64,000 nucleotides of DNA from Oopsacas minuta (GCA_024704765.1 JAKMXF010000307.1:248001-312000); one strand, 5' to 3'. Numbered from the stretch's first letter, positions 11,083 to 64,000 are shown. The notes: generated by a model not told the origin, from the letters alone. Translations and numbers: made by a program.

Positions 11083-11188
11083 CAACTCTCCTCTGCACTC
11101 CAAATAAATATCCATCCTCCAACAGCTTGTCTCCTCCTCTTTGTGACTTGATCAGCCTAAAGGTTGGCTGATCAAGAGGTTCCGTCAT
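9838..11188 (-). pseudogene. MULE transposase, right arm of copy 1, native ATG but frameshifted
   Basis: Starts MTEPLDQPTFRLIKSQRGGDKL at 11188. Frameshifts near 10913 and 10630, plus the same 7-bp C-terminal insertion. Confidence 0.88.
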
Positions 11189-20915: not shown

Positions 20916-23204
20916 AGATAGATCAACAAAATTTAACTTCATTTTCTCATCAAGTATTAGAATGACATTTTCTAACCTATTTTTCTATGCTGAATTCAAA
21001 TCTACTTTCTGATTCTTTCCAGCACGTCCAGTTTTCTTCCATCTACAAGTCAACGATTTTTAGGTATTTCCTAAATTTTTCCTGTTATTTTATGGTAGTG
21101 GCTGTCTTTTTGCCTTCTTACATGATAGCCATCTGAAATAAATCAAACTTTCGATGTTTTAGATTAATGCCAAGATAATATCAGTTATTATCCTAGCTCT
21201 TACATATAATTATTCACATTCATGCATGTATCAACTACTCAAAAACTAAGGGAAAACACATATCCATCTAGAAGTAAAAGGTAGCTAACTAAATTAAAAG
21301 TGTTGAGAGTATGATTTCTTTGTATATATCTTGTTGGGATTATCTCTGAAGAGCCTCCACCAGTAATCGGACATCATGCCCTCATTCCAGAAACCTTGGT
21401 ATCGGGTTTCCATCTCCTGTATGTCTTGGTGGAATCTCTCACCTTGTTCATCACTTACAGCACCAAGGTTCTCAGGGAAAAATCAAGATAAGAGTGCAAG
21501 AAGTGAAGTTTTAGCGACATGAGAAAGCCCAACTTCTCGTATACGTTGAGCAAGGTTTCCAATCCTTCTCTGTAGTTGGACGACTTCTTGTTGCCCAAAA
21601 AGTTCTCACAAACCCATTTGAAAGAATTCCAAGCACTCATTTCTAATTCGGATAATGTCTTCTCGAAATCTGGATTCCTGAATACTTGTCTGGTTTGTGG
21701 TCCTACAAATACTCCCCCTTCTAACTTTGCCTCGCTTAATTTCGGGAATTTGCCTACCCAAGGCAGAAATCCTGCTGAATTTGTGTTACCCATTGTTTTA
21801 ACGAATGTTTTCATTAATCCAAGTTTAATATGACGTGGGGGTAAGAAAACTTTGTTTGGATCTACCAATGGCGAATGCTGTAAATTGGTTTTCCCACTTC
21901 ATAGGTTCTCTTCGGCCAATCACATTTTTTATAATGTTTACCAGTTGCTCGGCTGTCCCATAGATATAGGAAACAACAATACTTTATAAAACCAAGTTGC
22001 AAGCCCATCAATAGCCCGATTATCTTAAGATCATCGCAGATATTCCATATATGTGTTCTATACTGTATTGCCTCCAAAACTTCCTGCAAATTAACGAAGG
22101 TTTCTTTCAGATAGACGGAGTGAGCAATTGGAACGCCAGGCTTTAGATTTCCGTTATGCAACAGAACAGCTTTCAAACTGCGTTTTGACGAGTCGATGAA
22201 AAGGCGCCAATCAGAGGAAGAATGTTCTTGTAATAGGTTTGCATTGAGTCCTTCGATATCATTACAATAGCACAGTGGACCATCAGTGGTGTAGTATTGT
22301 GTGAGATCGAAATTTCGCTTGCGATAGTGGGATACTAGGACATCTTTGTCGAGTAGGTTTTTCTGTTTGAGCCTGGATGCAAGGAGTTCAGCTTTGTCTT
22401 TAGATAAGTCTAGATCCCTGACCAGGTCATTCAATTCTCCCTGTGTAAATGTTTGTGGCTCTAGTAATTCATCTTCCGGGACATTATTAGCATCTGTAGA
22501 ATCTGCATGAACATCTTCCACCATATCACACCAGATTTTAATTTGCTGTGGCTTGGGAGTTGGGATTGGTAATGAGATGTCGTGTGGAATTGGCCTGCGA
22601 GCAGGATCCAAATCTGGGTAAACAAGAGCGTGCTTATTCTTGGCTGAGAATCCTGTAATATCGATAAGGCAAAAGTAACAATCATTAAGGTGATTTTTCT
22701 GTTCCCTCCAGGCCATGGGTATTGCAAATGGCATTGAAACTTTCCTTTTATTCAACCAATCACGTAGTCCACTTGAACAAGAAGTGCATATAACATGTGG
22801 TGTCCACGACTTATCTTGGTCACCATGTGGACATTCGAAGTACAATTTGTATATGTTCTTTAATTGATTTGTGATTGGTTATCTTGGTGATTTTACGCAA
22901 AAAAGATCACAAACGTAACAGAAATTGTCGAGATGAGTTCTACAATTACGATGCATGTTTGTAATTTGATTTGCTTGAATTCAAATAAGCAAAGTCATTT
23001 ATATTCCAGATAATTGAATCAAAATAGGCATGCTCATATAGCAATTTAGTAACTAGGTAATACTATACTATTGAAAAAATGGATATTGGATTTCAGAATA
23101 ACTAGACGTGCTAGAGAAATTCTGATTGCAAATTCGAGTTCAGCATTCAAAAGTATGCTAAGATAAATGTATGTGATCTCTGATGAGAAATCTTGTTGAG
23201 TTGT
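20916..23204 (-). mobile_element. Chapaev3-like transposon, copy B (transposase pseudogene 21294-22956)
   Basis: N-terminus MHRNCRTHLDNFCYVC, then GDQDKSWTPHVICTSC, WRLFIDSSKRSL, HIKLGLMK and SDEQGERFHQDI. Degenerate TCAACAA ends. Near-identical to copy C. Confidence 0.8.
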
Positions 23205-25500: not shown

Positions 25501-27776
25501 ACAAACTGTATATTTCACAACAGTATCAAGAATGTTGGAATCTTTTTGTTCAAAAATTCCAGCATATCGCGAAGAGTTCGTGGAATTTAGCGATTAGAAA
25601 TGGGGATAAATGCTGTAAATCACAAAAAATAGGACAAAGTACTTGCTTCAATGAGGATACAATTTTTTTGAGTGAAAAGATATTCTAAATTATTGATAAG
25701 TACTGGACTTTTGCATATCAAAAATATTACTCAGCTAAAAAGAACTGAGAATAGAATTCACATATAAAATCCATGTTGATCCAAGCGGGTGATATTCATT
25801 TACTATGTGGTATATGATATTTATGTACTTAAACACACTTGAATCAAATCTACCTTCAGCTATCCATATTTCCCAGCCACCATTCACTTTTGATATTTTT
25901 ATAATTCCTAGCCCTTAGGGAACCTACTTCAAAATGGAAAAATTGGGATAGTGCAATAATCATCAACAACTTTTGCAGTTGGAATTGTATAATTACATCT
26001 TGATTAGAAATACTTGTAACAGAATATACATTGGGATTGAAATTATTTGAAATATACTCTGCTGCAATTTCACGAATCCTCAGAAACTCCAAATCTCGAA
26101 TTTGCAACCTGAAATTGCTGAATCAAAGATGCAATGATATGCTTAAATGCTCTCGTTTCACTTAATCTTTCGAACACTCAATATTTAGATTTTGAGGAAC
26201 TGTCTACAAATATTAGCAATTTTGGAAACTTCAATTTTTAGCTCTAATCGATGCCCCTAACCAATGTGCACCCATGGATAAATTCAGACTCTCAATACAA
26301 AGTTATCATTGAGAAACTTCAAGTGTCACTACAATAACATATAGTCCTCACAAACAGTTTACGTCTCATTGTTTGAATGGACACTGAGACAGATGGCCTA
26401 AACTTTCAAAAGGCAGCTGACGTTTTGTGTTGTAGTTATCAAACTGACCCCTGTGACAGCAAAGAGTTTTTAAATGAGTTTATACACTTCCTTGAATTCA
26501 GAGAAGCCAGAATAATACTTTAGGAAAGTGAAATAGATCTCCTATGTGCGTAAAGATGGAGAAGGAGGGGGTACTCACTTTGAAAATGTTGAAACTCCAC
26601 TCACAACATGCTTGTGTATCATGACAAGGAACCTCAATGGAGATAGAGCTTTATACTAACTCAAATTAATTAAGTCAGATCTCCGATCAACAATGAGACA
26701 AGATCGTTTACATATTCTTGCGTTGTTTTAATAGAAAGTGAATCGGTTCGAGATGTGAACATAAACCACGGTATAGAACAGTTTGCTTCAGCTAAAACCA
26801 GAAAATGTGAAGGCAAACTTTAGCTAAACTAGATAAATTATTACTTTTCCCTTTATTTGCAATATGTATATGTTATTCATGCCAATAATAATTTTTAACA
26901 GCAATAAGTTAGGAAATGTGTTATGTACATTGTTTCTCTAGAATATCTACAAATAGGGCCTAGAACAGTGATGTCCAACTGGCGGACAGCGAGCTTCGGA
27001 TTGGATTAATCCAAACTCCTTCCAAAATTCTGACTATCTACCATATATATTCTATGTATTTACCCTTCGACATAATATCTACCAATCTTATTTTTTTACA
27101 ATTTCATTGAATTAGAGACTTAAGTTAAACATATTAATACATTAGGTATTATTCCAAGTAAGTAGTAATTGAATATTATGTACTTTTGAGCATTAGATTC
27201 ATAGTAGGAAATTTAGTAGCATACTGCAGTTTCAGAGAAGCAATCAATATTTTCTGATCCTTTTTGTATAAATATATGGACCATGACTGAAATCCTTTGG
27301 GCATCTATGGTCTAGAATAACATCAGAAAAATTGTAGGATAATGGAATATTAGATCAAATATTCACTTAGCCTTGGGCTCAGAAAGCCCTTAGTCCTGCA
27401 CCGGGTATGGGTATAACCTACTATACATTAGAATAACAGTAACTTGTGAACCTTGGAAAGGGATAGGTTAACTGATAGAACAACCCGTATGAGAATTCGA
27501 TTTTGAAGAAACGTAGATTTTGAGAAATTATCAGTATTAAAATAGTCTAATAAAGACTAGTCCTGGTCACTACTTTGGACCAGGGATAAGTGGATCTGAA
27601 TATATTCGAGAAACTCGATAGTGGTCGATAATGAGAAACTGGTACATTTTCGCCAGAATTAATGTACGATTGATATGTAACAATTCATAAAAGCAATTTT
27701 TATGCTTCAGATGGAGGTGAAGTCATTCGTTAACGTAACTGGCAAATATGCATTAAAACCTGGTCAATCTCTAAAA

Positions 27777-30079
27777 CAGTGGTTCTCAAACTGGGGTACG
27801 CCAGCACTTTTCCTAGGGGTACGTCGGTGTTTCACCTAATCATATCAATTCTGTAATAATCATATACAAATATTTCGAGTTACACACTATCATGTCAACA
27901 GACTCAGCACATAGATAGTAATTTCATGCCAAATAATTAATATGTATCAGTTACAATGGTTTCATCACTAATTATTATCACCCTTGAATATTTATTGTTT
28001 GAGGTTATGCTAATTAAGGATTCCATTGTTCGTACATATGTGTCAACTCATATTGATTATCATATTGTTCTTATAAAATGGAAATTAGAAGAGTATTTCT
28101 TTGAGACCTTGACTTTATCGCCAAATTCATATGGAATCTGCTAAGAAACGGAAGTATAATGAAGACTATATCAAATATGGATTTACATCCATACTTAAAG
28201 AGGGACGGGAACTACCACAATGTGTAATATGTTATAAGGTGCTATCTGAGGGCTCGATGAAGCCAAGTTTCCTAAAACGCCATTTAAGCGGGTGCCACCC
28301 AAATCTTGCAGATAAGGATATAGATTTCTTCAAGCACCAAGAGGTAGGAGTAAAGCGAATCCGTATAGATCACAGAGGACAATTAAGTCAACTGACTCAA
28401 GCAGGTCTTCGTGCCTCGTACATGGTGGCTTTGCGAATCGCTCAAGAAAAGAAACCACATACGATTGCAGAAAATCTTATACTACCCAGTTGTAAGGACA
28501 TCGTGCACTGCATTTTGGGAGATAGCGCCGAAAAGAAACTCGCCTCTCTGCCTCTCTCGAATGACACAATCAAGCGCCGAATTACAGATATGGCAGATGA
28601 CATTGAGCAGCAGGTAGTTGCTGAGATTTTGAGAGCCCCGGTGAACACATTTTTAATTCAACTTGATGAGTCAACGGATGTTTCTAGTTGTGCACAACTA
28701 CTGGTATGAGCGCGGTACATCAAAGACGGGGACTTCAAGGAAGAGTTCCTATTTTGCGATTGTTTGGAAATAACTACAAAAGGAGATGTCTTCCAGCAGG
28801 TACTTTGAAAGAATGGGACTATCCTAGAAGTATGTTTCTGCTTGCACAACAGATGGTGCTCCTGCTATGCATGGAATTCATTCGGGATTTCGAGCTCGGG
28901 AAAAGACAGTGAATCCCGTTTCGAAACACAATCACTGTATGATACACCGATACGCTCTTGCGTCTAAAACACTTCCATCCGATCTAAAACTTGTTCTTGA
29001 TGATGTTGTCACCATGGTCAATTTTATCAAGTCCAGTGCTCTTAATACACTTGTGTTCCGCCTAGTGTGCCAAGAATTAGATATTGACCATCAGAATTTG
29101 CTGTTCTATACTGAAGTTCGTTGACTCTCATGAGGGAACATGCTCTCTCGAGTATATTCACTGAAAACCAATTGCTTGAATTCTTTGAACGAGATGGGAA
29201 AGAGAAGTCAAAAGTATTCTTCGGCAAACTCACAGACAAAGAATGGCTGAAAAACCTCACCTACTTAAATGATATCTTCTCGCGAATCAACTTGCTCGAC
29301 AAGTCCCTCCAAGGACGGTTTACTACCGTGATTGATTGTGTGGACAAGATTCGGGCATTTATTATGAAGTTAGAACTCTGGGAAGCAAAGTTAACCGCGG
29401 GAAAGTTCGATTTTTTTGAAAGCCTCTCAGCAACTCTTGGAGAAGAGGGTACTACAGATCAAAGTATAGGTGCTCTAGTAAAGGCTCACCTCTCAGCAAT
29501 GCGAAATGAATTTAAACTTACTTCCCAGACTTAAGCGACCTGGACATGAAAATGATTCGAAATCCATTCAGATGCGATGTAAGTTCTATACCAGACAGAG
29601 TCCAAGAGGAATTTGTTGAATTAGTCAATGATTCTATTGCCCGAGATCAATTTGAAACACTCGCACTCACAAAGTTCTGGTGCGAAATGAGCTTGATATA
29701 TCCCAACGTAGCAGATAGAGCAGTAAAAACTTTGTTGATGTTTCCCAGTACTTACCTTTGTTAACAAGGATTTTCAGCGCTATTACTAATTAAAAACAAA
29801 TTTCGAGCGCGGTTGTCTGTGGAAGCTGATCTCCGTCTGGCCCTTTCAAAAACTGTGCCACGAATTGATAGCCTGATACACAACATGCAAGCACATCCTT
29901 CCCACTAATTAATTATCTACTTTATTTATATTGCTAGAATAAAAAACACTTTTATTTTTCACAACTGGGTAAAAGGGATTGTAAACCTAATATTTACAAT
30001 GCAGGCCATTTTAAGGGGTACATCACACACAAGATCCAGCTTGAGGGGTACGCAAAGAGAAAAAGTTTGAAAACCACTG
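27777..30079 (+). mobile_element. hAT Buster-type transposon, full length
   Basis: TIRs CAGTGGTT(C/T)TCAAACT. Perfect 8-bp TSD CTCTAAAA (27769-27776, 30080-30087) with TA at positions 4-5, the Buster target consensus. 2303 bp. Confidence 0.95.
28131..29908 (+). pseudogene. Buster-type hAT transposase with stops and frameshifts
   Basis: Motifs KRKYNEDYIKYGFT, PQCVICYKVL, QLDESTDVSSCAQLLV, HCMIHRYALAS and FPSTYLC, fragmented across several ORFs. Confidence 0.9.
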
Positions 30080-32285
30080 CTCTAAAACTATGTTAAATGT
30101 TAACAATGAATCAACGTTAAAATGTTGAAATTCCAAATAATCTAATACAGTCTGAGCGATAATTAAGAATTTGCGAATAATATCATAAAAAATTATACTA
30201 TTTGGTATTTCAACAATGTGAACATAGATGAATAATTAACGTTCAATATAGTTTCAAAGATTGAGCAGTTTTAAATACATATTTTCCAATTAGGCTACCA
30301 TATGACATCACTTCGATCTGAAACACAAATGTTGCTTCTTTTGAATGGTCACACATCAATAATATATTTATTCGATTGAAAATGTACCAGTTTCTTATTA
30401 TCTGCGATTTTAGATTTTCGCATCAAAATATATCCGCTTCCTTTTATCCCTGGTCCTGTGAAATTTGCCTCAATGATCAGGCCTTATCTTTAGTAGGCTA
30501 TAGTATTAAATATTTACTGAACAATAAGTCCTTAACAAATTTACGCTATAATATTTCAGGTATTGACAAAATAAATGTGTAGTAGGGAGATATTTGCTAA
30601 AACATACCTAGTAGACCGTGAAATATTGTATTTTACATTTTATGTGAAAGGTTGAAATGATCTAGAGAAACAATTATACAAAATTTCAAAAATTTAGAAA
30701 CAATTATGTTAGCTGACTTGTGAATCTTGTACCATCATGGTAACATAATCATTTCTTAATAAGTTGACAATTATTCAAAAGGATGACTTCGTGAAATTTG
30801 GCATATTGTTGGGTACTAGTGATTCAAATTTCAACCATCTATCAAGTAGATTGGTTGAGTTGTGGAAAATCTTTGGAATATCTAAAAATGTGACAATGAC
30901 CTCATAGTTACGTCGTAGGGGTGAATTTTCGTCCAAAACTCAAATTATCTGGGCCAAGATACACCTGTATGCAGAATATCAGCATTGAGGGTCTTCCAAT
31001 TTCTTCTATGTTCAGCTATCTTTAGAAAATATATATTCACAACTATGTAAAATAATTCAGTATTTACAGTGTTTCTCCAAACAATTCATTGAATAAGATG
31101 ATAAGTACGGGACTTCAATTCATGCAATTTAAATAATCAATTCATAAAACAACCTTGCATAAATATACATACAGTCTTCATTATACAAAATAATCACATG
31201 ACAATAAAAATCTTTTATTGTTCATCATTTGCTTTCATTATATCCTTATCATTATGACATATAGTAATAAACCGCAATAATTAAAAACAATCTAAAGAAT
31301 CACAAATGGTGAATTTTGCCAGACCCAAGAACATTACATGCAACGCATGTAATTCAATACGCATTGGTGCTAACACAAGAGCCAAACATTTGACATTATG
31401 ACAAGACTATATACGATCAGAAAATTCCACACTCGGAAACGTTCCGTAAGATATAGTAAGTGAGGGATATTTGATAGTAAATATATACAGACAGCCTTGT
31501 TGTATCAATATCGAATACATCGTAATAGTAATAGTCTTAGTGTCTACTAGCGTACTAGATTTCAAGACCGCTGCCCAACAGCTTACTGCTCCAGGCTAGC
31601 TTAAGAATTTGAGAGCTAAATTAAAACACAGTGTTGCTGGTCGCTATGAGCCATAATATAATCGATTCTAAGTGTCTTGAATTCACAGAATAGTTTAAAT
31701 CTGGGATTAAATTATTCATGGCCAATCAAAATGACATGAAATGGCCTTCTATGGTAATACTGCAGACCCTACGTGGCTTTGGGTTATTATCTGGGCACGT
31801 CGTGTAACAGATAAAAGGACAAAAAATGAACATAAAATTCTTTCGTATATATAAAATTCTGTGCCTTTGAAATAATAGGAATTATTGCAAAGTTAGACTT
31901 TTGGAAATCTCAACAAAATCAGAATCCTGTGATTTTGGCGAATAGAACGAATATCTTAGGTTCGCAACTATCGGAGTTGGTCAAAACCTTTGCTAATCCA
32001 AGATACCACTAGATATAGCAATTGATGGCATCCAAATATTAGTGTATTTCGAGTGCATATAATATTCTATACTTATATACATAGTCTGAAATATGATCAC
32101 GCGACACTACAAAAAATAAGCAATTAATGTGAAAGGCGATAAAATTAGCATTTGAAATTTATTAAGTGCCAAGTGGACACACACCAGCTGATATGGAAGA
32201 ATGTTTATACTAGCTAACGAAACACTTGGTGTTAACCATTTTCATCAACCTTCCACAAGTGTTAATCGTGGACTACAGAATATGA

Positions 32286-47358: not shown

Positions 47359-47410
47359 CAATATATATCCTGGCCATACATCGATTCTAAACATCCATAA
47401 GAAAATAGAC

Positions 47411-48120
47411 CTGAAAGAACGATATGACTGTGTTAGTTAATGTTATACCGACTAAATCCCTGAAAACTCTATATTTCATTATTTAATAGCCACATTTTGC
47501 CTATTGAAAATACTAAACTAATTGTAAATCAATTAATATTGCACAAAGCTCAAATTTGACGAACAAATCTGATAGCATATTTGAATTCTACCGGTTTGTG
47601 TTACCCCAGCATGAACATTTCGAATTTTTACAACAAATAATATAGACTTATGACATTTTCATATTTGTTCAACTTGGCAAAATTGGCATATATCAAATAT
47701 GTATGGGCCACTCATATATTAACATAAATATTGCAATAATCGACATATTTGCACTATACAAATATTTGCAATTCGGTTTAGAGAATCTCAAGTGATTTTC
47801 ATAAACTATTCCATTCTGGTGCCAATAGTCTAGTAAAGTGCCACTTCTGACACAAAATATTAAAATGCAAAAAAGTCAACGAGATATGCTCTACACATTT
47901 CGAAAAATACATAATGGAGTTAATACAGATCTGTAGAATTCAAGTAAGCTATCAGAATTGTTCCATCTCATTTGAGTTTTGGTTAAATATGAATTTGAAT
48001 ATGTAATTAGCTCATTATCTATTTAATGAGCAAAGTGTGGCTATTAAATATCAAATTACTAATATTTCAAGGATTTATCCTGGACAATCTTAACTAACCC
48101 AGTTATATAGCTATTTCAGG
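47411..48120. mobile_element. Old foldback/MITE with ~170-bp degenerate TIRs
   Basis: CCTGAAA...TTAGTTAA...AAATCC.TGAAA...TTTAATAGCCACA.TTTGC...TCTGATAGC is present as an inverted pair at 47411-47577 and 47947-48120. Confidence 0.65.
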
Positions 48121-48125
48121 TATAT

Positions 48126-50037: not shown

Positions 50038-52012
50038 ACATAGAGTGTATATGCTTCTTGTTTTTGGTAGCTCATTTACAATAATCTCTAAGGCTCGAAC
50101 ACATTCATAGAATTTTTGAAAAGTTGACAAATTGGATGGAATCTTATCACAATAAGGACAAAAGTAAAATAAAATCAATCAATCAAGTAGCCAATCAAAT
50201 ATTTCTATCGAATTTGGAAATGAATTCCATAGAATACAAATAAATTGTCATTACATTTTTGGAGAAAAGTATCCTGAGGACATCAGGGATAAATTCTACT
50301 CTTAATTCAGTTCAACAAAGATTCACATCGTCTGGCATTAATCAATATATTCGTGAATACATAGGAATTTCATAATGATAGATAAATTGAAAATTTATGA
50401 CTAGTCATAATTATTCGCATTCTTTCGTTTTAGTTGTTGATTCGCAACGTCCTCATTATATTAAGAATAGTTCGACTGTTCTTAAGGCAGATGTCAGATA
50501 TTAAAGTTGCTATTAATGAAAGTCTCGAATTCATCTAAGTAACTTTATCGAATTCGTCATAAAAAATTGTGTGAGTTCAATTATGCTTGGAGAATTAGGG
50601 CCTTGAATGGTTACCATGTTGCAGAGATCCGATGGATTCCTATAAAGCACAAAGTGCTTAGCTTTCTTGCCCTGTGGGCTCACGAACACTCCGGATCCTC
50701 TTGTATTCTTGTTGTTAAAAGTTCAATAGAAAATAGGAGGACAACTTGACAAGCATAAATTTATTTCCTCTTCAACTGTTTGCAGTCTTTCAATTTTTAT
50801 ATTCAGAATATTTTTGAGTGCGAAGAAGCCGAGTTCACAAAATAATTAGTCCAAAAATGCTGTAGATTTTAAGAGCCTAAGTTATTATCAGAGGGCAATG
50901 TGTTTTAACATATATTTAGAATATATCAAGGTCTATTTCTTTATACATTAATTTCAAGATGTGATCATTCCTAATATCATCCAACTCTTCTTCCTCCTCG
51001 ATATCTAATAGAAGATCGTTTAATCCACCCCGAATAATGGATTTCTCACCCAGTCATAATCTTCATTAGGCAAATTTGGAATGCAACGCTGAATTTTATC
51101 TTGTAATGTGTTAAGGTATTCAGTGATATGCGAAATAATCCATATGCATTGCTCAAAGCGGGATGAAGAAAAATATCTAAATTCACTTTTGTAACTCGGA
51201 TTTTATAGAAGTATTTTTTCATTCAGATACTACATCTTATGTGTAGAAATGCGGATAGAAGTGGAAATACAACATATCTGTAGCATTAGCTAACTTTGCA
51301 CACCAAGTTGTATCAGCAAATAAATTCACAAAACTTCTTTGATATCTTCAATAGTGAAAAACTTAACCAGATATTTTTTCAGTTCATAGATGCGAGACAA
51401 TCTTTTACTCTCGATAGTAATTTGACCTCTCTGCGGCTTGACATGTTGATATCCCATTTCTTCACAAAGCGTAGTAAATTAAGTAAGATTTCGGCGGCAT
51501 TTGATCAAATTCACGTTTTACAAAGTCGTCAAGTGCAGCTTTTGTTGAAATCCCATCATCTAATGCTTCGCGGTGAAAAAGTAGTGTATGGTTACGATCT
51601 CCTTGTTTGCTGTTTTGTCAAAGTTACAAATCTCTTCATTGACCCAAACATTGTTGGAGCAATCTGTACAATGGAATACCGACAATTCGCACCTAATTTG
51701 ATTGGTCAATTAATTCCGAATATGATTTTTAGCATTGTATGATCAATTTTTGTTGTTATTTATGTATATAAAGTAAAGAAATTTCCAAAAGTTCGTATAC
51801 TTCTAATGGCTACAGAGGTAATTGAGTGTTCGAATAGCATATCGTGAATATTCGACTTAGAGAGTGACTTTCAAAGCATACATAAGATACTTAGTAATAC
51901 ATAACACAAATTATCAGTTGATTAGGAGTAACCTAGGCGCCCGAAAGGTGCCTATTGAGGACGCTTCGTGTCCGCAACCGCGTACCGCAAGGAAGAGTAG
52001 CTTACTTGTATA

Positions 52013-54026
52013 CTGTATTTCCCTGAATAAGCGCCCCGGCGCTTATTTTTTCGTGCACATGAAACTCCAGGCCCTTATTTTGAGGAAGATGATAGAAATT
52101 AGTTTTCCCTAATTAAATAGGTAGTATCTAAAAATACATTGATGAAGTTAGTACTATATAAAAGCTACGTAACTATGCAGTGCATTTATAAGGATCATCC
52201 TGGACCTCCTCACACAAATTTTCGTCATCTAGGATAACAATTTGATTTAGTTCATCTTGTTCAAAGTCTAGTTCGTGCGGGTTTTCAGACTTGTCATCCA
52301 TACCGTTGTTTATGGTCAGTTCTTCTAATTTCTGAACTAGCTCATCACGCTTGTTGAAAAGTATCCTATTCTCTTTAATAACTGTGATCTTATCATTTTC
52401 GGAATTGTCAATACTATTTGAAATTGCGCACGACTTGAAAGATTCTGTAATGATTTCTGTGGATAAGGGTTCCCAGGCTTTTTTGACCCACGAGGCTACT
52501 AAAAGTTTAGTAGGAGCTTTCATGTTACCACCACGTGTGTACTCTTTCTCACCTTCACTCATCCACTGCTCATACTGCTCACGATAAGCAGCTTTAAAGG
52601 ACTTATTCCAGGACACATCAGGCGCTTGGATCAGACCGGTGCATCCTCCAGGAATAACTGCATGTCAGTTTTCAGCCTTGCAACCTCTTTTTTGACACTA
52701 TCTTGGATATGACATCTAAAACTGTTCCAAACAAGTAGTCTCCGCCCGAATGATAATCCTCCCCATACAGTTTGTAACCATTCATGGGTCAACTTTTCAT
52801 CCATCCATCCATTACTACTCATAACACAAACAACACCACTGAGTTCATTAAGATCACGATCACGTCTTTTACCTTTGAAAACAATAAATGGGGGTAGTTT
52901 AATGCCATTTGCTTTAGCAGCGAGACACACAGTAATGCGGGACTTTTCGTGGCCGGTTGTCCTAATTGGGATAGATTTCTGTCCCACGAAATCGACAGTT
53001 GTATCGACAGGCATGTCAAACCATATTGGAGTCTCATCCATGGCTCCGATATGGGAAAGCTGGTATCGATTACGTAGAATTTGCGAGCGTACGAAGATGA
53101 TGTAATTCATCAACTTTGGAATGACTGTTTCAGGAATCTTTTGTCCAACTGTAGTACGACGCCTGAGAGTAATATTGTGTCTACCAAAAAAGTTCCGTAG
53201 CCAACCGCGACTTGCTACGAAGGATTCTTCTTCTCCAGCATAGAGTTCTAGAGCCTTTCCCTGTACCATTTTACGTGTAACTCTCAGCCTCTGGCTTCTC
53301 AGTTCCTCAATCCATGAATACAAACTTTCCTCCAACGTCTCGAATGAAGGCGGCCGACCACCGCCATCTAGCCTACGACGCTTTGCATTATGAGCAGCTT
53401 CACAACTATCTTTTAGCTTGTCTTTATTTTTGCACCATTCTCGGATACGCTTGCAGTCGACACCATACTTTCGAGCTGCTTCTTCCTTTGAATTTCCAGA
53501 AGTTACAAAACAAACAGCTTCTAATTTAAATTCAAGTGTGTAGCTATGAAACTTTCGTTTTATTTGTCCTTTTTCCATATTTACTATTGCTAATATGAAA
53601 GGGAAGACAATATTATGTAGCTAATAATGGCTAGTACCGGTACACAAATTACTATTTGTACAATTTGAAAAATCTAACATATAAACTCAACACAATACAA
53701 TTTGTAATCCAACATCTATTAATCGAGCTTTATACTAATCAGAATGTTTTTCACATCACGTAATCAGTTCACACTAACACGTTTATTACGCCTACTTTCA
53801 GTTTTTTAATCGATAGAATCATAATGTAAACATTATTCATTCATTCAAACTTGTGATATACCATATACATATACCTTTACTGATCAATGAATTTCAATCC
53901 CTAGCGTTTATTTAAACGGGCACTTATAATAGACCGGCGCTTATTCTTTTCGTTCATATGAAACCCTCGGCGCTTATTCAAACCGACGCTTATTCAAACT
54001 CCCGGCGCTTATTCGGGGAAATACGG
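52013..54026 (-). mobile_element. pogo-superfamily transposon (DD35D, Passer/POGK-like)
   Basis: TIRs C(T/C)GTATTTCCC(T/C)GAATAAGCGCC with TA duplication. The empty site is visible in MULE copy 1 near 7430-7436. Confidence 0.93.
52173..53578 (-). pseudogene. pogo transposase (Brk-type DBD, CENP-B HTH, DDE_1) with a 1-nt frameshift near 52660 and second D changed to N
   Basis: Motifs SYTLEFKLEAV, FVASRGWLRNF, GAMDETPIWFD, LLVWNSFRCH and (AVIPGGCTGLIQ)APDVSWNK, with 35 residues between N and the last D. Confidence 0.88.
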
Positions 54027-54905
54027 TATGTTGAATTTTTGAACTATACAAGTAGTAAAGTATAGATTGCACAATCTGTGATCAAAGAATTATCCATACA
54101 TTTGGGAAAATATAAATAAAATCATTCCGGATTTATTATAATACAATTTGAAGCTGTTCTTCTATGGAAAATCTTTCTTATATTTCCCCACATTGAGCTG
54201 GGCTAACTCAAAATTGCTACTTAAATTCCTTTAATAATACGGTAGACTCCGCTTAATAGAGCCACCGGTTAATCTGGCCAACACCTTTATCCAGTAAATA
54301 TAGGTGATAATTTAATAACTGGATGGGTACTGTTTCGGTTAAGTAAACTAGCCATCCACTTTTAAATATTGGCCTTGCTGAGATAGAACGGAATGATATC
54401 TGTAACAGATATTTTGTTCATTTAACTTATAATCATGATATCACTTAGGTCATGATTAAATGAACTTCATACCCCTACACAATTATCCTACAAAATGGGG
54501 ACATGAGAATACTTGCCAGTAGGATATCCAATTCAAGCATTAAGTGTTACGTAAAGTTTGAACCACCCCGTTCGTGCCAGGAAATTAACCCTTTAGGTTT
54601 CTATTCGATAACAAGTCAGATGAATCAAGTCAAGTCATAAATAAACTATATTTAATGTCTAATATGCATGTGTCAACAAACTAATTGAATAAAAATAATG
54701 ATAAATATAATAAAAATAAGAGAATAAACAATTATGATAAATTAAAATACATATATATAAGAGAATAGTGTTGTAGGAGAAAGATCAAGAGAGGTGCAGC
54801 TACCGCATCATAACCATTGTTCTTCTTCCATGGTAGCTGCACCTCAATGGAGAGGATAGAGGAGAGGAGAGGAGAGGAGTGGAGTGAGAAGAGGAGATAT
54901 GGCGG

Positions 54906-56235
54906 ATTGGTTGTGTGAGCAAAGAGGGGTCTGCAAAGCTAGAGTTCATACCAAAGGGATGGTGGTAGTCAAGCGCACGAATGAGCACTCCCATGGGCCT
55001 GACGAGCAGGCAGCAGACTGTTATGAAGCGAAGGCAGGCATGAAGAGAAAAGCACGGAGTCCCAGGATAGCACACACCACATAGTGGGCGAGAGTTTGCA
55101 AACAGCATCAGAGGGTACTGCTGCTAAACTCCCCAAACTGGACAGCCTGAAGCGGACGATACAACGCCAATGTGCTAGTGTACTTGCAGCTCCAGCACAG
55201 CCTACCACTCTAGCAGAGCTAGCTCTACCAGCAGCCTACCAGCAGACAGCCAAGGGAGAACAGTTCTTACTCTACGACTCTGGTGCAGACGATGTACACA
55301 GATTCCTCATCTTTGCGACACAACACAACCTCGGGATGCTGCAGCGAAGCAAGATCTGGCTTGCTGATGGCACCTTCAAGACGGCACCTCCCCTCTTCGC
55401 CCAAGTGTATGTGGTGCATGGACTCCGTGGAGGAGATGATCCTATGAAGACCGGTCATCTGTTACCGAGCCTGTTCGTGCTACTGCCCAACAAGACGGAG
55501 GCTGCCTACCTGAGGATGTGGGAACAGATCCGCCTACTGTGTTCACTTGCCCAGCCTCAACAGATGCTCCTGGACTTTGAGAAGGGCGCGATTACCAGCT
55601 TTGAGCATGTCTGGCCTAACACAGTAGTGAAGTGCTGCTTCTTCCACCTCACACAGAATATCTGGCGCCATGTGCAGTCTGTAGGGCTGCAGTCTGCCTA
55701 CACACATGACGAAGAGTTGGCTATGCGCATCCGGAGGATACCAGCCCTTGCTTTTGCCCGACCAGCAGACGTACCCGATCTGTTTGATCAAGTGGCAATG
55801 GACCTCCCCCTTACGCCTGAGATAGGCGAACTAGTCGACTACTTTGAGAGGACGTATATCGGCCGCACAGTTACCAGCGGATACCATGTAGCGGCGACGT
55901 ACCCTATTCACCTGTGGAACAACCACATCAGCACGCCCTTAGGACTCCCCCGTACAACCAACGCCGTAGAGGCATGGCACCGCAGCTTCAATGCCACTGT
56001 CGGCTGCCATCACCCTACCATATGGAAGTTCATCCTCTCCCTCAAGCGTGAGCAGGGCCTAGTGGAGGTGCGGCATACTAACTACCTCGTTGGCAAGCCA
56101 CTAACCAAGCGGAGGTGGTCCCAACAGAGTGAGGAAGCGTTGAAGACTCTAGTTCGTGAATATTATTCTCCAGATCGTTCTAAAATGGAGTTCTTGCAGG
56201 GTGTAGCACATCATTTCAGTCTGGGAGCCGATTAA
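54906..56235 (+). pseudogene. MULE transposase, left arm of copy 2: no native start, frameshift near 55060, but intact C-terminus
   Basis: ORF 55084-56235 ends GKPLTKRRWSQQSEEALKTLVREYYSPDRSKMEFLQGVAHHFSLGAD and lacks the 7-bp insertion. Confidence 0.85.
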
Positions 56236-57639
56236 CATGTTAATCTAAAGGATTATCTCTAATCAATGTATTGAGGGCTAGATAATACTTCGATTAACAT
56301 ATTAATCGGCTCCCGGACTGAAATGATGTGCTACACCCTGCAAGAACTCCATTTTAGAACGATCTGGAGAATAATATTCACGAACTAGAGTCTTCAACGC
56401 TTCCTCACTCTGTTGGGACCACCTCCGCTTGGTTGGTGCATGGTGGCTTGCCAACGAGGTAGTTAGTATGCCGCACCTCCACTAGGCCCTGCTCACGCTT
56501 GAGGGAGAGGATGAACTTCCATATGGTAGGGTGATGGTAGCCGACAGTGGCATTGAAGCTGCGGTGCCATGCCTCTACGGCGTTGGTTGTACGGGGGAGT
56601 CCTAAGGGCGTGCTGATGTGGTTGTTCCACAGGTGAATAGGGTACGTCGCCGCTACATGGTATCCGCTGGTAACTGTGCGGCCGATATACGTCCTCTCAA
56701 AGTAGTCGACTAGTTCGCCTATCTCAGGCGTAAGGGGGAGGTCCATTGCCACTTGATCAAACAGATCGGGTACGTCTGCTGGTCGGGCAAAAGCAAGGGC
56801 TGGTATCCTCCGGATGCGCATAGCCAACTCTTCGTCATGTGTGTAGGCAGACTGCAGCCCTACAGACTGCACATGGCGCCAGATATTCTGTGTGAGGTGG
56901 AAGAAGCAGCACTTCACTACTGTGTTAGGCCAGACATGCTCAAAGCTGGTAATCGCGCCCTTCTCAAAGTCCAGGAGCATCTGTTGAGGCTGGGCAAGTG
57001 AACACAGTAGGCGGATCTGTTCCCACATCCTCAGGTAGGCAGCCTCCGTCTTGTTGGGCAGTAGCACGAACAGGCTCGGTAACAGATGACCGGTCTTCAT
57101 AGGATCATCTCCTCCACGGAGTCCATGCACCACATACACTTGGGCGAAGAGGGGAGGTGCCGTCTTGAAGGTGCCATCAGCAAGCCAGATCTTGCTTCGC
57201 TGCAGCATCCCGAGGTTGTGTTGTGTCGCAAAGATGAGGAATCTGTGTACATCGTCTGCACCAGAGTCGTAGAGTAAGAACTGTTCTCCCTTGGCTGTCT
57301 GCTGGTAGGCTGCTGGTAGAGCTAGCTCTGCTAGAGTGGTAGGCTGTGCTGGAGCTGCAAGTATACTAGCACATTGGCGTTGTATCGTCCGCTTCAGGCT
57401 GTCCAGTTTGGGGAGTTTAGCAGCAGTACCCTCTGATGCTGTTTGCAAACTCTCGCCCACTATGTGGTGTGTGCTATCCTGGGACTCCCGTGCTTTCCTC
57501 TTCATGCCTGCCTTCGCTTCATAACAGTCTGCTGCCTGCTCGTCAGGCCCATGGGAGTGCTCATTCGTGCGCTTGACTACCACCATCCCTTTGGTATGAA
57601 CTCTAGCTTTGCAGACCCCTCTTTGCTCACACAACCAAT
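54906..57639. repeat. Long inverted repeat (arms ~1.35 kb, 21-nt loop at 56259-56279)
   Basis: 54906-56258 is the near-exact reverse complement of 56280-57639. Confidence 0.95.
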
Positions 57640-57757
57640 GCGTCACATCTCCAACTCTCCCCTGCACTCCAAATAAAAATCCACTCTCCGACAGCTTATC
57701 TCCTCCTCTTTGTGACTTGATCAGCCTAAAGGTCGGCTGATCAAGCGGTTCCGCCAT
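56405..57757 (-). CDS. FLYWCH-MULE transposase, right arm of copy 2, 450 aa, catalytic core intact, last 44 aa replaced by 12
   Basis: ATG at 57757. Motifs WLCEQRGVCKARVHT..HSH, LADGTFK, LLDFEKG, CFFH and TNAVEAWH. The 7-bp insertion near 56440 shifts the end to PCTNQAEVVPTE. Confidence 0.85.
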   Translation of the reverse strand: MAEPLDQPTFRLIKSQRGGDKLSESGFLFGVQGRVGDVTHWLCEQRGVCKARVHTKGMVVVKRTNEHSHGPDEQAADCYEAKAGMKRKARESQDSTHHIVGESLQTASEGTAAKLPKLDSLKRTIQRQCASILAAPAQPTTLAELALPAAYQQTAKGEQFLLYDSGADDVHRFLIFATQHNLGMLQRSKIWLADGTFKTAPPLFAQVYVVHGLRGGDDPMKTGHLLPSLFVLLPNKTEAAYLRMWEQIRLLCSLAQPQQMLLDFEKGAITSFEHVWPNTVVKCCFFHLTQNIWRHVQSVGLQSAYTHDEELAMRIRRIPALAFARPADVPDLFDQVAMDLPLTPEIGELVDYFERTYIGRTVTSGYHVAATYPIHLWNNHISTPLGLPRTTNAVEAWHRSFNATVGYHHPTIWKFILSLKREQGLVEVRHTNYLVGKPPCTNQAEVVPTE

Positions 57758-59601
57758 TAAGGATTGTTAAATTTCAAAGACACAATGCATAAGTAATAAT
57801 GAGAAAACGAATCTGAGTTAGAACTAGATCATTTTCTATTTATGTCCGAGGATTGCAAATACCACAGGTGATCACATCCTGTTTACTACATTCCTCTTTA
57901 CCAAGTATAGCCCTAAGAGTATTTACTTCGTGCGTGTTTACTTAATACTTACTATAGCAATCTTTGTAATTCATATCATTAAATGGATTCATGGAATCAT
58001 GTCATCTAAAATTAGAATTATCTATCCAATTAAGACTTTCCGTGTGTAGATATAATTATTAGAAAATTGATTATTAACATGTACTTGGATTAAATTAATT
58101 AACTAATATCATATCAAATTGACCAATCAAATTAGGTGCGAATTGTCGTGGTGCGAATTGTCGGTATCCGCTGTACAATTATTAACGCAGCATTCCCACT
58201 TCAAGCCTCAGAATACCGATACTGACAAAATGTTTGAAATATATCTTGATATGTTGTAGAGTTCTTTACCATATAGAAATTGATCTAGATTTGGTCATCA
58301 CCAATATAACGAATGAAAGTTAGCAGTTGAACTTTTCCTCCAATATCTATTGATACCTAAACTTGGAGGGGCTACATATTATTAAACATTACAAACAGTT
58401 TTTACGATGTCAACAGACATGTCATGAATGCGTCTGCTAATGGTACAATGGGAGAGATGAAGATTCATAATTCTTATTCAGCACCCCATCAATCATTGTT
58501 TATAGGATAATCTTGAAAGCAGGAGGTAGCAATTGTGTGGGATTTCATCTGGATTGCTAAAGGTTCTGCTATTAAATAGCCTGCTTCTTGAACTTTATTA
58601 GAATTGTTACATTTTAAAACAGTCGAAATCTATTGTTGGTGGTGAAATAAGAGTCACTTGAAGAATTCCAAAGGTTTATCCATGAGCTGACGAGGTTTTG
58701 AAAGAAAACATCTCTTTAGATTGATTGGAACCATAGCTTTATTTGAAGGTTTATCACCAAAAACCAGGCATTCTTGAATTGGGTAGTTACCAGACGAAGT
58801 GAATCCTATCGAGATATAACTATCAGAATACAATCAAAGTTTGTTTACTTTTGTAAGTGCTATTAAACAATTGACTGAGGCACCATTAGAGTAGTACTTT
58901 TCAACAACCAATTCAGGATCGAGAATCATTTCTTCATTCTGATTATGGAATAGGAAATGTCTTTTTCCAAAGACATCTCCACTAACAATATTCTAGGAAT
59001 GTTATTATATCTAGTTAAAAGATAAAAGTAGTAGTAAAATTGAGAATATTGTACAATATAATACTCCAGAGGAACGTCAGAGGACAATAAAATGCACATT
59101 GGTATGGTATCAATACGAGATAAAGCAATAAGTAATTGTTGTAAGGCCTGCGGCACCCGTAGAGGAGGCCAAAGGTACAACTGGTTAAGATCCACTGGTC
59201 TAAGGTAACACCAATATAACAACAATGTACTAAATACACTCATATTATTTTAACTCTGTTGTATATAGAGAGTTGCCATACATTTCAGATTACTGCTGCA
59301 TTACCATCTCAGCAACATAAGAAGTTTTAACCAATTCCACCTCCTTCTAAAATGTGGAAATATATAGGAATGGACGTCGTATGTGAATTGTTTGAGAGTG
59401 AATACGGTTATAAATATATATTAGCGACTTTGTTATCTGGGCAAGTATGTTGTCGTACACCCTCTTAAGTCTAAGACATGAGAAGAAGTCAATCAAAATC
59501 TGCAAGATATCTACCTGGATATGGGATAAATCGATACCACCAATCATGGCCAAAGCAAGGAGTTCACAAGTAAAGTGACTAAAGTGTATTTTACTGGTTA
59601 C

Positions 59602-62121
59602 CAGTATGAATCCACCGGGGGGGTTCAGGGGGGTGCGCACCCCCCAAATTGGCTTATTAATTAAATTTAATTATATATGTATAAATGCCCATGATTAATG
59701 AATGTACACTGTAATTAACATAATTATATAAATATAATTATTAACTTTATGGCCTAATATTAAATATCTTGCAGGTCAACGTGTTAAGTATTTATATGAA
59801 ACGACAAGTGGAAAACCAACTTACACTGGATTATTTTCAATCCAAACGAGACAACAACAGACCAGATGGTTGCGAAGATGAATATCCATGCTACATGCAT
59901 TCTGAACAACAGGCAGTAGATAACACTGTGCTTGAGATTAACAGCTCTGCTGGGATGATACAGGGTAGGTTTATGATTTCAAACGCAGAGCTAAATTTAC
60001 CTACTAAATTTTCTAGATATAAACACCGACTGGTCTCTGCCTCAAGACAATGGTTATAAGAAAGATGGACCTGCCCATCCACTAACCCTCTTCCCTACTA
60101 AACCTGATTGTAACAAACGAAAAACAAACCGACTCCAGGCATCGTGGTATAGTAAACACCCCTGGATCACTTACAGCGAATCGCAAGACAAAGCATTTTG
60201 TTCTCCATGTATACACTTCAGCATCACAACGTTACAGGACAGGTTTACAAAAAAGGGATTTCATAATTGGCAAGTTGCAGTTGGAGACAAAAACAAGGGG
60301 CTAGGCAAGCATGCTAGGTATGAATCCCACATTATAGCTATGATGAAATGGAAAAACTATAAGTCTAACCCTTGTCGAGATCCAGGAAAGACTTAATCCT
60401 AATCGTCACATGCAGGTTGAGCAAAATAGAATCTATTTCGGTAAACTTGTCAGCTATATCAGGTGGTTTTGTCTTCAGGAAGTCGCTTTTCGAGGTGAGG
60501 AGGAACACGATGTCGGATCAGTCTGTAGAGGAAACTTCAGAGAACTTCTTGAATAGAATTCGAGCTGCATCCCGAATTCCTAGCCCAGAAGAAGTCTATT
60601 ATGGAGCAGTACTCATTTTACACAGATTACCTCAGTAAGACCGTCTACGAAGAATTTATCTCAATCATAGCTGGCGAGATTAGGAAAATTATTGCAAGAG
60701 AGATTGCTCAAACAAGTTCTACACATTAGTGTTGACGAAGCTAAGGATGTCAGCAGCTATGAGCAGCTTTGTTTATGTGTAAGATATTGCTCAGGATCTG
60801 TTCCAGCTGAAAGATTAATGAGGCTCATACGTCTTTCAGAGGGTCTATTTGATGCATGTGCTATAGTCCGTGAAGCTAAAGTTCTTATTCAATTGCTGTC
60901 TGGTTTTGGGTGTACACTAGTGGGATTAGCAGTTAATGGTGCTTCTGTTATGTCCGCTAAATTGGCTGGAGTGCAAGCACTACTTAAGGAAGAACATCCG
61001 TGGCTTATCTAAGACACTGTGCGGCACATAGACTTAATTTGGTTTTAGTAAAGGCTCTCAAAAATTTGTGTCCAGCTATGAACAATATAGTGGACAAACT
61101 CCACTCGCTATTCAATTCAGCTAAAACGAATGACAGTTTTGAAACAGAGCAAAAGATACTCAAGATCAGGGTGCTAAAGATTCCATTACGATCAGAAACA
61201 TGGTGGTCATCCATGTTCCACGTACTAGGTGTTATATGCTCTCGCTTTAAACCGATCATGCTCACTCTTATGAAAAGGGTAGGGGATGACGACAACGCAG
61301 CACTAACTGCTGGCGGTCTTTACCACAAGATGGCATGTGATGAGTTCATAATTAATTGCGTCGTTCTGAGGAAAGCCCTTGCAACTATTCACAGCCTGAG
61401 TGAATATTTACAGGGAGCATCAATTGAGTGGCATCACGTTGCACACGATATTAGAGCCTGTAAGTCAATGATTAGTCAGTTTGGAAACGAAATGTCTGTT
61501 GCTGAAATGTTGGAACATGCAGAAGAAATCAGTACTGATTGCTGTATACTCCTAAATGTGACCTCACCAGTTAACATGACAAGAAATTCAACAGAACATG
61601 TTGATTACTTGAGCCATATACAATCATTTTCAACAAAGGTTTGCCACAAAGTCTTAGCTGAATTAAGATTACGATTTCTTGACACTGGTATGGAGCTGCT
61701 CAAAGGCATAGATGGCCTGAATAGCACTTCACAAAAGTACTTAAAAAGGAAAACACTTAGCAAATTAATTGCTCATTATGATGACGTGTTAGACGTTAAT
61801 GAGACGTTGCTTAATGCAGAATTAGCAAAGTATCACATGTTTGCTAATTCTGGATCAGGTATAGCAACCATGGATCCGGCTTTCTATCCCAATCTGATGA
61901 AACTCTTTAATTTAAAGAGAAGCTTGCCTGAATCATCAGCAGAAGCAGAGAGAACTTTCTCAACGATAAAACGGGTAAAAACACAACAAAGAAACCGTCT
62001 TGATGACACACGTTTATCAGAACTCTGCCTCCTAGCTTGTGAAAAAGAATTGACCAAAGCTCTCAGCATAAATAGCACAATAGAAATCTTCAATCTGTCA
62101 AAAAGAAGAGGGCCTCTATAA
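59602..62121 (+). mobile_element. hAT Tip100/ZMYM1-type element with broken transposase; 3' end interrupted by Chapaev3 copy C
   Basis: GC-rich hAT-like left end near 59602. Motifs WYSKHPWITYSESQDKAFCSPC, VDEAKDVSSYEQLCLCVRY, HCAAHRLNLVL and SSAEAERTFSTIKRVKT..RNRL. Confidence 0.8.
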
Positions 62122-62149: not shown

Positions 62150-64000
62150 CACAGGTCAACAAAAATTTAACTTCATTATCTCATCAAGTATTAGATTGAC
62201 ATCTTCTAAGCTAGTTTTTAACGCTGAATTCAAATCTACTTTCAGATTCTTTCCAGCACGCCCAGTTTGTTTTCCATCTACAAATCAATGATTTTCATGT
62301 ATTTCCTAAATTTTTCCTGTTATTTTATGGTAGTGGCTGTCTTTTTGTCTTCTTACATGATAGCCATCTGAAATAAATCAAAGTTTGATGTTTTAGATTA
62401 ATGCCAAGATAATATCAGTTATTATCCTAGCTCTTACATATAATTATTCACATTCATGCATGTATCAACTACTCACAAACTAAGGGAAAACACATATCCA
62501 TCTAGAAGTATAAAGGTAGCTAACTAAATTAAAGTGTTGAGAGTATGACTTCTTTTTATATATCTTGTTGGAATTATCTCTGAAGAGCCTCCAACAGTAA
62601 TCGGACATCATGCCCTCATTCCAGAAACCTTGGTATCGGGTTTCCATCTCCTGTATGTCTTGGTGGAATCTCTCACCCTGTTCATCACTTACAGCACCAA
62701 AGTTCTCAGGGAATAATCAAGGTAAGAGTGCAAGAAGTGAAGTTTTAGCGACATGAGAAAGCCCATCTTCTCGTATGCGTTAAGCAAGGTTTTCACTCCT
62801 TCTCTGTAGTTGGACGACTTTCTGTTGCCCAAAAAGTTTTCACAAACCCATTTGAAAGAATCCCAAGCACTCATTTCTAATTCGGATAATGTCTTCTCGA
62901 AATCTGGATCTCTGAATACTTGTCTGATTTGTGCTCCTACAAATACTCCCTCTTTTATCTTTACCTCGCATAGTTTCGGAAATTTGCCTACCAAATGCAG
63001 AAATCCTGCTGAATTTGTGTTACCCATTGTTTTAACGAATGTTTTCATTAATCCAAGTTTAATATGAAGTGGGGGTAAGAAAACTTTGTTTGGATCTACC
63101 AATGGCGAATGCTGTAAATTGGTTTTCCCACTTCATAGGTTCTCTTCGGCCAATCACATTTTTTATAATGTTCACCAGTTGCTCGGCTGTCCCATAGACA
63201 TAGGAAACAACAATACTTTATAAAACCAAGTTGCAAGCCCATCAATAGCCCGATTATCTTAAGATCATCGCAGATATTCCATATATGTGTTCTATACTGC
63301 ATTGCCTCCAAAACTTCCTGCAAATTAACGAAGGTTTCTTTGAGATAGACGGAGTGAGCAATTGGAACGCCAGGCTTCAGATTTCCGTTATGCAACAGAA
63401 CAGCTTTCAAACTGCGTTTTGATGAGTCGATGAAAAGGCGCCAATCAGAGGAAGAATGTTCTTGTATTAGGTTTGCATTGAGTCCTTCGATATCATTACA
63501 ATAGCACAGTGGACCATCAGTGGTGTAGTATTGTGTGAGATCGAAATTACGCTTGCGATAGTGGGATACTAGGACATCTTTGTCGAGTAGGTTTTTCTGT
63601 TTGAGCCTGGATGCAAGGAGTTCAGCTTTGTCTTTAGATAAGTCTAGATCCCTGACCAGGTCATTCAATTCTCCCAGTGTAAATGTTTGTGGCTCTAGTA
63701 ATTCATCTTCCGGGACATTATTAGCATCTGTAGAATCTGCATGAACATCTTCCACCATATCACACCCGATTTTAATTTGCTGTGGCTTGGGAGTTGGGAT
63801 TGGTAATGAGATGTCGTGTGGAATTGGCCTGCGAGCAGGATCCAAATCTGGGTAAACAAGAGCGTGCTTATTCTTGGCTGAGAATCCTGTAATATCGATA
63901 AGGCAAAAGTAACAATCATTAAGGTGATTTTTCTGTTCCCTCCAGGCCATGGGTATTGCAAATGGCATTGAAACTTCCTTTTATTCAACCAATCACGTAG
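62150..64000 (-). mobile_element. Chapaev3-like transposon, copy C (runs off the window)
   Basis: TAA followed by the end CACAGGTCAACAAAAATTT at 62150. Transposase pseudogene from 62529 is near-identical to copy B. Confidence 0.8.

Follow-up and report, generated by a model that had tools for sequence, protein, structure and literature searches.

We found that two insertions of the same Mutator-like DNA transposon in the glass sponge Oopsacas minuta carry a long internal palindrome built from the element's own transposase gene, and that, as assembled, the asymmetric centre of this palindrome is turned around in one insertion relative to the other. The loops of the two copies (9691-9711 and 56259-56279) proved to be exact reverse complements in a scripted comparison (21/21 bases), and both elements have the same overall orientation, with their unique left and right parts matching on the + strand; a first-pass annotation of this DNA had proposed both points. 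An exact reverse-complement match of 21 nt, at homologous positions of copies that are 94-97% identical, is not chance. From the assembled sequences, we conclude that both orientations truly exist in the wider family.

Inversion across inverted repeats is already well known, and what is unusual here is the setting. It is less usual for the mobile form of a transposon family to carry a long inverted duplication of its own gene, each insertion being a small palindrome with conversion, flipping and loss of the centre.

The analysed stretch, referred to below as the window, comprises 64,000 nucleotides of contig JAKMXF010000307.1 in assembly GCA_024704765.1 of O. minuta, a hexactinellid. Coordinates are window positions unless they carry the prefix L, which denotes loci fetched from the same assembly. 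Eleven such loci were reached through annotated proteins of two 90% clusters, which gives 13 copies in total; in ten of the 13, loop orientation could be scored against the unique left and right ends of the element. All family sequences that we compared come from one hybrid SPAdes assembly, with a single assembled sequence per locus.

A palindromic transposon and its two insertions in the window

The two insertions and their parts are listed here by position.

7086-11588, + strand: copy 1 of a FLYWCH+MULE DNA transposon; homology to copy 2 stops at these ends
7077-7085 and 11589-11597: target-site duplication of copy 1, GTAGAAAAG, the same 9 nt directly outside the two ends
About 7086-7139 and 11535-11588: terminal inverted repeats of copy 1
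7086-8297 and 11102-11588: unique left part and unique right part of copy 1
8298-11101: internal palindrome of copy 1 (left arm 8298-9690, loop 9691-9711, right arm 9712-11101)
8298-9668, + strand: left-arm transposase gene of copy 1, 5'-truncated inside the FLYWCH domain (from ORFs and a Pfam MULE match of 38.8 bits)
9735-11188, - strand: right-arm transposase gene of copy 1, full-length (from ORFs)
9678-9724: minimal inverted segment of copy 1, orientation A, made of the 21-nt loop and asymmetric inner stems
51673-58170, + strand: copy 2 of the transposon, oriented like copy 1 and carrying a nested insertion
51664-51672 and 58171-58179: target-site duplication of copy 2, CTGTACAAT, the same 9 nt on both sides
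52004-54026, - strand: nested pogo/Tc5-like DNA transposon in the unique left part of copy 2, with a TA duplication on its flanks
54876-57670: internal palindrome of copy 2 (left arm 54876-56258, loop 56259-56279, right arm 56280-57670)
54876-56235, + strand: left-arm transposase gene of copy 2, 5'-truncated (from ORFs and a Pfam MULE match)
56302-57757, - strand: right-arm transposase gene of copy 2, full-length, with a 450-aa ORF holding FLYWCH and MULE
56246-56292: minimal inverted segment of copy 2, orientation B

The hallmarks of MULEs are a MULE-domain transposase, terminal inverted repeats and a target duplication of about 8-11 bp. The present element, about 4.5 kb long, is a Mutator-like (FLYWCH+MULE) DNA transposon, whose transposase combines a FLYWCH zinc finger with the MULE domain. 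The MULE domain (PF10551) scored 38.3-38.8 bits in three ORFs of the window, where the cut-off is 27.6, and 33.0 bits in a 481-aa ORF at locus L005. The right-arm ORF of copy 2 exceeds the cut-off for both FLYWCH (39.9 bits) and MULE (38.3 bits), and the left arm of copy 1 has a partial FLYWCH match under the Pfam cut-off. The ends common to the copies are inverted repeats starting GGAATACCGACAATTCG / CGGATACCGACAATTCG, and the left end recurs over its first ~46-54 nt, inverted, at right ends of other copies.

Perfect 9-bp target duplications, all of them different, were found at copy 1, copy 2, L008 and L011. The duplication at L007 matches at 7/9 positions, and at L009 no recognisable target duplication was found at the element ends. 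Since the target duplications of copies 1 and 2 differ, the two are independent insertions; the shared termini, together with the differing 9-bp duplications of the four copies, indicate that the palindromic element moves as a unit. A segmental duplication as the source of copies 1 and 2 is ruled out by the same differing duplications and by homology that ends at the element ends. A separate origin of the palindrome in each copy is ruled out as well, as the outer junction and the asymmetric centre are common to both subfamilies described below. Nor is the element a foldback transposon: its palindrome is internal, and the long repeats do not reach the element ends, as the left side has 1.2 kb and the right side 0.49 kb of unique sequence between the palindrome and the short terminal repeats.

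The nested pogo/Tc5-like element of copy 2 is about 2 kb long, has inverted ends and is missing from copy 1 at 7429/7433. Its transposase frame is split into two ORFs, with Pfam matches to CENP-B_N, HTH_Tnp_Tc5 and DDE_1.

The palindrome itself consists of two convergent transposase genes placed tail to tail, with stop codons about 33 nt either side of the centre. In self-BLAST, the inverted self-match is 98.2% identical in copy 1 and 97.7% identical in copy 2. The two arms of copy 1 are 14 substitutions and 5 gap columns apart, with longest identical runs of 476 and 394 nt, and those of copy 2 are 11 substitutions and 27 gap columns apart, with a longest identical run of 825 nt. The arms (8298-11101 and 54876-57670) also stand out in composition, with 54% G+C as compared to ~33-35% elsewhere in the element and in the genome around it.

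None of the four transposase genes in the window is intact. Damage was judged against the 481-aa ORF of L005, the sole uninterrupted one found in the family, and none of the four genes has an in-frame stop relative to it. The left-arm gene of copy 1 has up to 3 frameshifting indels, some of which may be alignment effects near the truncated edge, and the right-arm gene of copy 1 has 3 frameshifting indels and 1 in-frame indel. For copy 2, the corresponding numbers are 2 frameshifting indels on the left, and 1 frameshifting and 1 in-frame indel on the right. Copy 1, in both its arms, and copy 2, in its right arm, have one frameshifting indel in common, which is missing from the 15 other arms examined, including those of the nearest relatives of copy 1. 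Either a short exchange between these two neighbours, which lie 46 kb from each other, or a mutation that recurred may lie behind this distribution.

Orientation of the palindrome centre

The part of the inversion that can be demonstrated is a short segment around the loop. In BLAST, 7433-11588 and 54027-58170 align as one + strand match, which fixes the outer parts of the two elements in the same direction. Within this frame, the four-arm alignment bears out the earlier claim that the asymmetric variants of the inner arms change sides when the loop does: at all informative sites up to 28 nt from the centre, the left arm of copy 1 reads like the right arm of copy 2, and the right arm of copy 1 like the left arm of copy 2. 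No cross-side site was found beyond 28 nt from the centre in the alignment of copies 1 and 2. The demonstrably inverted segment is therefore at least 47 nt long. As single-stranded DNA, the centre of copy 1 (9641-9762) is predicted to fold into an imperfect hairpin of -48.1 kcal/mol (z -15.4), and that of copy 2 (56208-56329) into a hairpin of -44.5 kcal/mol (z -14.6).

Farther out, no same-side or cross-side sites between copies 1 and 2 were found from about 54 to 1351 nt from the centre, and no side-specific arm markers shared between copies were found from about 30 to 1350 nt. Because such markers are absent from the middle of the arms, the reach of each inversion is not marked. One apparent cross-side marker, seven alignment columns between copy 2 and L011, turned out to be an artefact of unequal extract ends. 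It is worth mentioning that a 16-nt self-palindromic motif, GATTAACATGTTAATC, ends each arm where the gene has its stop codon, some arms showing single changes in it; its positions are 9664-9679, 9725-9740, 56231-56246 and 56293-56308, and the minimal flipped segment lies exactly between the two motifs.

The first-pass annotation had called for loop orientation to be scored in all copies relative to the unique left end. Both orientations are present, in a ratio of 3 A to 7 B, and they are distributed as follows.

Orientation A: copy 1, L009 and L006
Orientation B: copy 2, L002, L008, L011, L010, L005 and L003
Unscorable: L007 (1500 Ns from the centre), L013 (scaffold ends at the centre) and L012 (deletion across the centre)

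Orientation B is the majority form and probably the ancestral one. By their flanks, the copies fall into two subfamilies, the first with copy 1, copy 2, L002, L007-L011 and L013, and the second with L003, L005, L006 and L012. Orientation A occurs in both subfamilies, which implies at least two flips. In the first subfamily, 13 derived flank sites group copy 1 (A) with L002 (B) and L009 (A) as a clade, and no flank sites were found that unite the two A copies against L002. This pattern hints at a third flip event; the trio is star-like, and a single flip inside subfamily 1 may account for it. In the assembly, the two orientations appear at different insertion sites, each known from one assembled sequence.

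The scoring depends on the assembler having placed each centre correctly. A de Bruijn graph may represent both arms of a palindrome by one shared edge, and the direction of the centre is then ambiguous unless reads or read pairs bridge the identical stretches. For copy 1, identical arm runs of 394 and 476 nt separate the centre from the next side-specific markers, so only mate pairs or long reads could orient it. The assembly broke exactly at the palindrome centre in two copies, L007 (1500-N gap) and L013 (scaffold end). For this assembly, Illumina and Canu-corrected PacBio reads were combined in SPAdes 3.9, followed by scaffolding with SSPACE, Pilon polishing and gap-filling (PMC10280926). 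Its de Bruijn graph was built with k up to 99, and the long reads served just for threading the graph (PMC10280926).

These properties are what an assembly artefact would draw on, in which the true orientation of the window pair is equal and the centre of copy 1 was placed arbitrarily between indistinguishable arm stretches. We consider this explanation of the window pair unlikely. Mate-pair and PacBio reads existed that could bridge about 1 kb (PMC10280926), and the observed ratio is 7:3, not 5:5. Moreover, copies that leave little room for ambiguity show both forms. L010 (B) has its left arm and loop and nothing of the right arm, and L003 (B) has a right arm interrupted ~330 nt from the centre. 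On the A side, L006 has a left arm reduced to ~350 nt, and the arms of L009 differ by 48 substitutions, with no identical run longer than 227 nt. Since A and B both occur among these anchored copies, the family would hold both orientations even if copy 1 were mis-oriented. Orientation A of copy 1 itself is probable, not certain. For annotators, such elements carry a warning that hybrid assemblies break or guess at palindrome centres of this kind.

Proposed arm exchange and competing explanations

Besides the flipped centre, the palindromes carry a mark of arm-to-arm exchange, namely the similarity of the arms within each copy. In six of the seven two-armed copies, the arms are nearest neighbours of each other, diverging by 0.3-1.0% within a copy as compared to 1.8-9% between copies. 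The exception is L009, in which the arms are 3.1% apart; at the other end of the range, no difference was detected between the arms of L002 over 1353 nt. A comparison of copies 1 and 2 revealed 32 arm sites fixed within each copy, where both arms of one differ from both arms of the other. Across the family, 107 copy-specific derived changes are carried by both arms and 50 by one arm only. Since every copy inherited the palindrome, a change that the two arms of a single copy share must have passed from one arm to the other. In L008 and L005, the inner arms have lost their asymmetry, each in the opposite direction to the other.

The arms of individual copies thus show concerted evolution, the degree of which may be inflated by graph collapse. 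Arm differences are patchy, with clusters near the centre and at the outer edges. They cluster where short reads can phase them, which fits collapse as well as conversion tracts, and the perfect identity in the middle of the arms (runs of 825-1353 nt) may be due partly to graph construction. The low arm divergence is real in order of magnitude, since the assembler kept arms as diverged as those of L009 apart. GC-biased conversion was not found among the both-arm fixed changes, which comprise 32 W>S and 61 S>W and resemble the single-arm changes. The S>W excess in the arms looks as if a G+C-rich coding sequence decays toward host composition.

We propose a joint reading of the flip and the arm similarity, to which we give about an even chance of being correct: the copies are independent MULE insertions in which repeated exchange between the arms homogenises them and a rare crossover inverts the centre, copy 2 having kept orientation B and copy 1 having been flipped. 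The standard form of the family contains the 2.8-kb palindrome, in which a full minus-strand transposase gene faces a 5'-truncated copy, the two being split by an imperfect hairpin tip of ~50 nt. With long, near-identical inverted arms on one DNA molecule, the arms could pair and exchange. Most exchanges would be non-reciprocal (gene conversion), by which the arms of a copy would stay alike and the copies would drift apart. An occasional crossover would invert the sequence between exchange points, and the direction of the asymmetric centre would be its only visible trace. Copy 2 would then retain the commoner orientation B, and copy 1 would bear the flipped centre A. The structure, the inversion as assembled, the presence of both orientations in other copies and the pattern of arm similarity are seen in the sequences; from these we infer that the exchange is homologous recombination between the arms, in place after insertion. 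Both components have precedents. In human Y palindrome P6, 56 conversions were counted against 3 inversions (PMC3723533), and IS elements have been inverted via recombination between their terminal repeats (PMC3004938).

The earlier claim of at least one crossover between the arms stands only in part. The centre is inverted and arm exchange is the simplest cause, but a short template switch gives the same product. By that route, a short-range inter-strand template switch at the hairpin tip during replication would turn ~50-100 bp in place, with the long arms uninvolved. The polymerase would cross to the other strand and return, so that loop and inner stems are copied as their reverse complement. 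The demonstrably inverted segment is just 47 nt and coincides with the imperfect hairpin tip, and template switching also "corrects" imperfect stems, which would explain the symmetric inner arms of L008 and L005. Loop inversions of this origin have been documented in hairpins; those documented are mostly 4-8 nt long, whereas the segment here is at least 47 nt (PMC8794818). A template switch would also leave the homogenisation of 1.3-kb arms over, for which a second process is required, and its product is indistinguishable from that of a crossover near the centre. On balance, we regard a template switch as an improbable source of the flip.

A third possibility places both homogenisation and flipping in the copying of the element, for example in gap-repair synthesis after excision, with the nascent strand folding back or re-invading the other arm. 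The range of arm divergence, from none over 1353 nt in L002 to 3.1% in L009, could be taken in its favour, as L009 has the most diverged arms and is without a matching target duplication, as for an old insertion; this age correlation rests on one copy, though. Truncations at or near the centre (L010, L012 and L006) resemble aborted copying across a hairpin. However, those MULEs whose transposition has been studied move by cut-and-paste, and the hairpins arise on the flanking DNA and not on the element (PMC5499845). The inner-arm asymmetry is kept in most copies, which means that the arms are not simply recopied up to the loop, and the arm differences are patchy instead of evenly spread. We give this explanation very little credence.

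Its strongest version, in which arm matching and the flip arise at every copying of the element through nascent-strand fold-back or arm-switching, so that copies are born with matched arms and either centre, is likewise highly unlikely in our view. If it were true, a cut-and-paste transposon would gain an internal clock like the paired LTRs of retrotransposons, and the standard mobile form of the whole family would be a self-complementary gene pair of the Mu killer type.

The centre is also a weak spot of the element, as seen at five loci.

L007:7439-8938: 1500-N gap beginning exactly at the centre
L013:6784-6786: scaffold end at the centre
L010, at about 6950: everything right of the loop missing
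L012, at about 6786: asymmetric deletion across the centre
L006:7246-7591: left arm with ~350 nt remaining

The centre truncations and deletions of L010, L012 and L006, together with the strong hairpin (z about -15), fit the known fragility of palindromes.

Related systems and genomic neighbourhood

In plastid inverted repeats, the yeast 2-micron plasmid and herpesviruses, exchange between inverted repeats reverses the segment between them, and both isomers coexist about equally in one cell or virus stock. In the 2-micron plasmid, the exchange is driven by a dedicated recombinase. The sponge element has the layout of such flip-flop systems, with inverted arms of ~1.39 kb on one molecule flanking a centre that has an asymmetric stretch of 47 nt or more; both centre orientations are found relative to outside markers (3 A and 7 B, as placed by a hybrid assembly). 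In contrast to plastids and herpesviruses, the sponge forms are observed at different chromosomal insertions, with one sequence per locus.

The palindromes of sex chromosomes (human Y P1-P8 and primate X) share with the sponge element inverted arms around a unique spacer on one molecule, and arms that are far more alike than orthologous or paralogous copies are. In Y palindromes, as in our reading of the sponge element, inversion is the rarer crossover outcome of the same exchange (PMC3723533). The scales are different, with arms of 1.4 kb and a spacer of ~20-50 nt here as compared to arms of 9 kb-1.45 Mb and kilobase spacers on the sex chromosomes, and no GC bias is seen in the sponge element when it is set against the Y palindromes. 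Unlike the Y palindromes, the sponge palindrome lies inside a multicopy mobile element, so each insertion is an independent replicate. If long reads confirm the orientations, the family would supply at least a dozen small and independent instances of the process known from giant sex-chromosome palindromes. Arm conversion, spacer inversion and centre deletion could then be followed in an early-branching animal at the size of a single read, and rates and tract lengths would be readable directly from sequence.

Within transposons, a close parallel to the flip comes from IS elements of Wolbachia (Ling and Cordaux 2010), where exchange between inverted repeats of one DNA transposon turns its interior around without moving the element; such events were recognised as copies with the inside reversed relative to the ends (PMC3004938). 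There, the repeats are the short terminal ones, the whole interior flips with its gene, and the host is a bacterium; in the sponge element, the repeats are an internal gene duplication, the visible flipped part is non-coding, and the host is an animal. The hairpins with template switches described by Mönttinen and Löytynoja (2022) resemble the sponge centre in that the tip is reverse-complemented and the stem unchanged (PMC8794818). Those cases concern loops of a few nucleotides in RNA genes, whereas the segment here is at least 47 nt and includes imperfect inner stems. The flip/flop of parvovirus-type terminal hairpins was weighed as an analogy alone and set aside, since the palindrome is internal and the hairpins of MULEs form on flanking DNA (PMC5499845).

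With respect to gene structure, a close counterpart is Mu killer of maize, which also belongs to the Mutator superfamily and carries an inverted partial duplication of its own transposase (MuDR) gene (PMC3440606). The sponge element has an inverted duplication of MULE transposase sequence, in the form of two convergent gene copies, and a long hairpin RNA is possible in principle from both. Mu killer is a single rearranged locus that silences its family, whereas the sponge family carries its inverted duplication as a standard feature and has inserted many times in this form, its ends intact and target duplications present. These observations mean that a DNA transposon can keep spreading despite a long inverted duplication of its own gene, while a similar structure silences a family in maize. 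No description of a MULE family with such an inverted gene duplication was found in the open-access full-text literature.

The window holds further repeats. A second pair, 20920-22767 and 62153-64000, consists of direct repeats with 96.4% identity, the second of which is cut off by the end of the window; its members lie downstream of the two MULE copies, one after each, at differing distances. The ORFs of this pair (327 and 137 aa) have no Pfam match. Other transposon genes abound nearby according to the precomputed annotations (59796-62121 on the + strand, L002:10848-12867 and L012:210-2993), and the types represented are hAT dimerisation/DUF4371, a gene with a RAG1-like RNase H fold, and THAP9-like. 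Two further inverted repeat pairs, 27577-27777 with 30251-30456 and 47405-47624 with 47899-48125, are 72-75% identical and are possibly the ends of other old elements.
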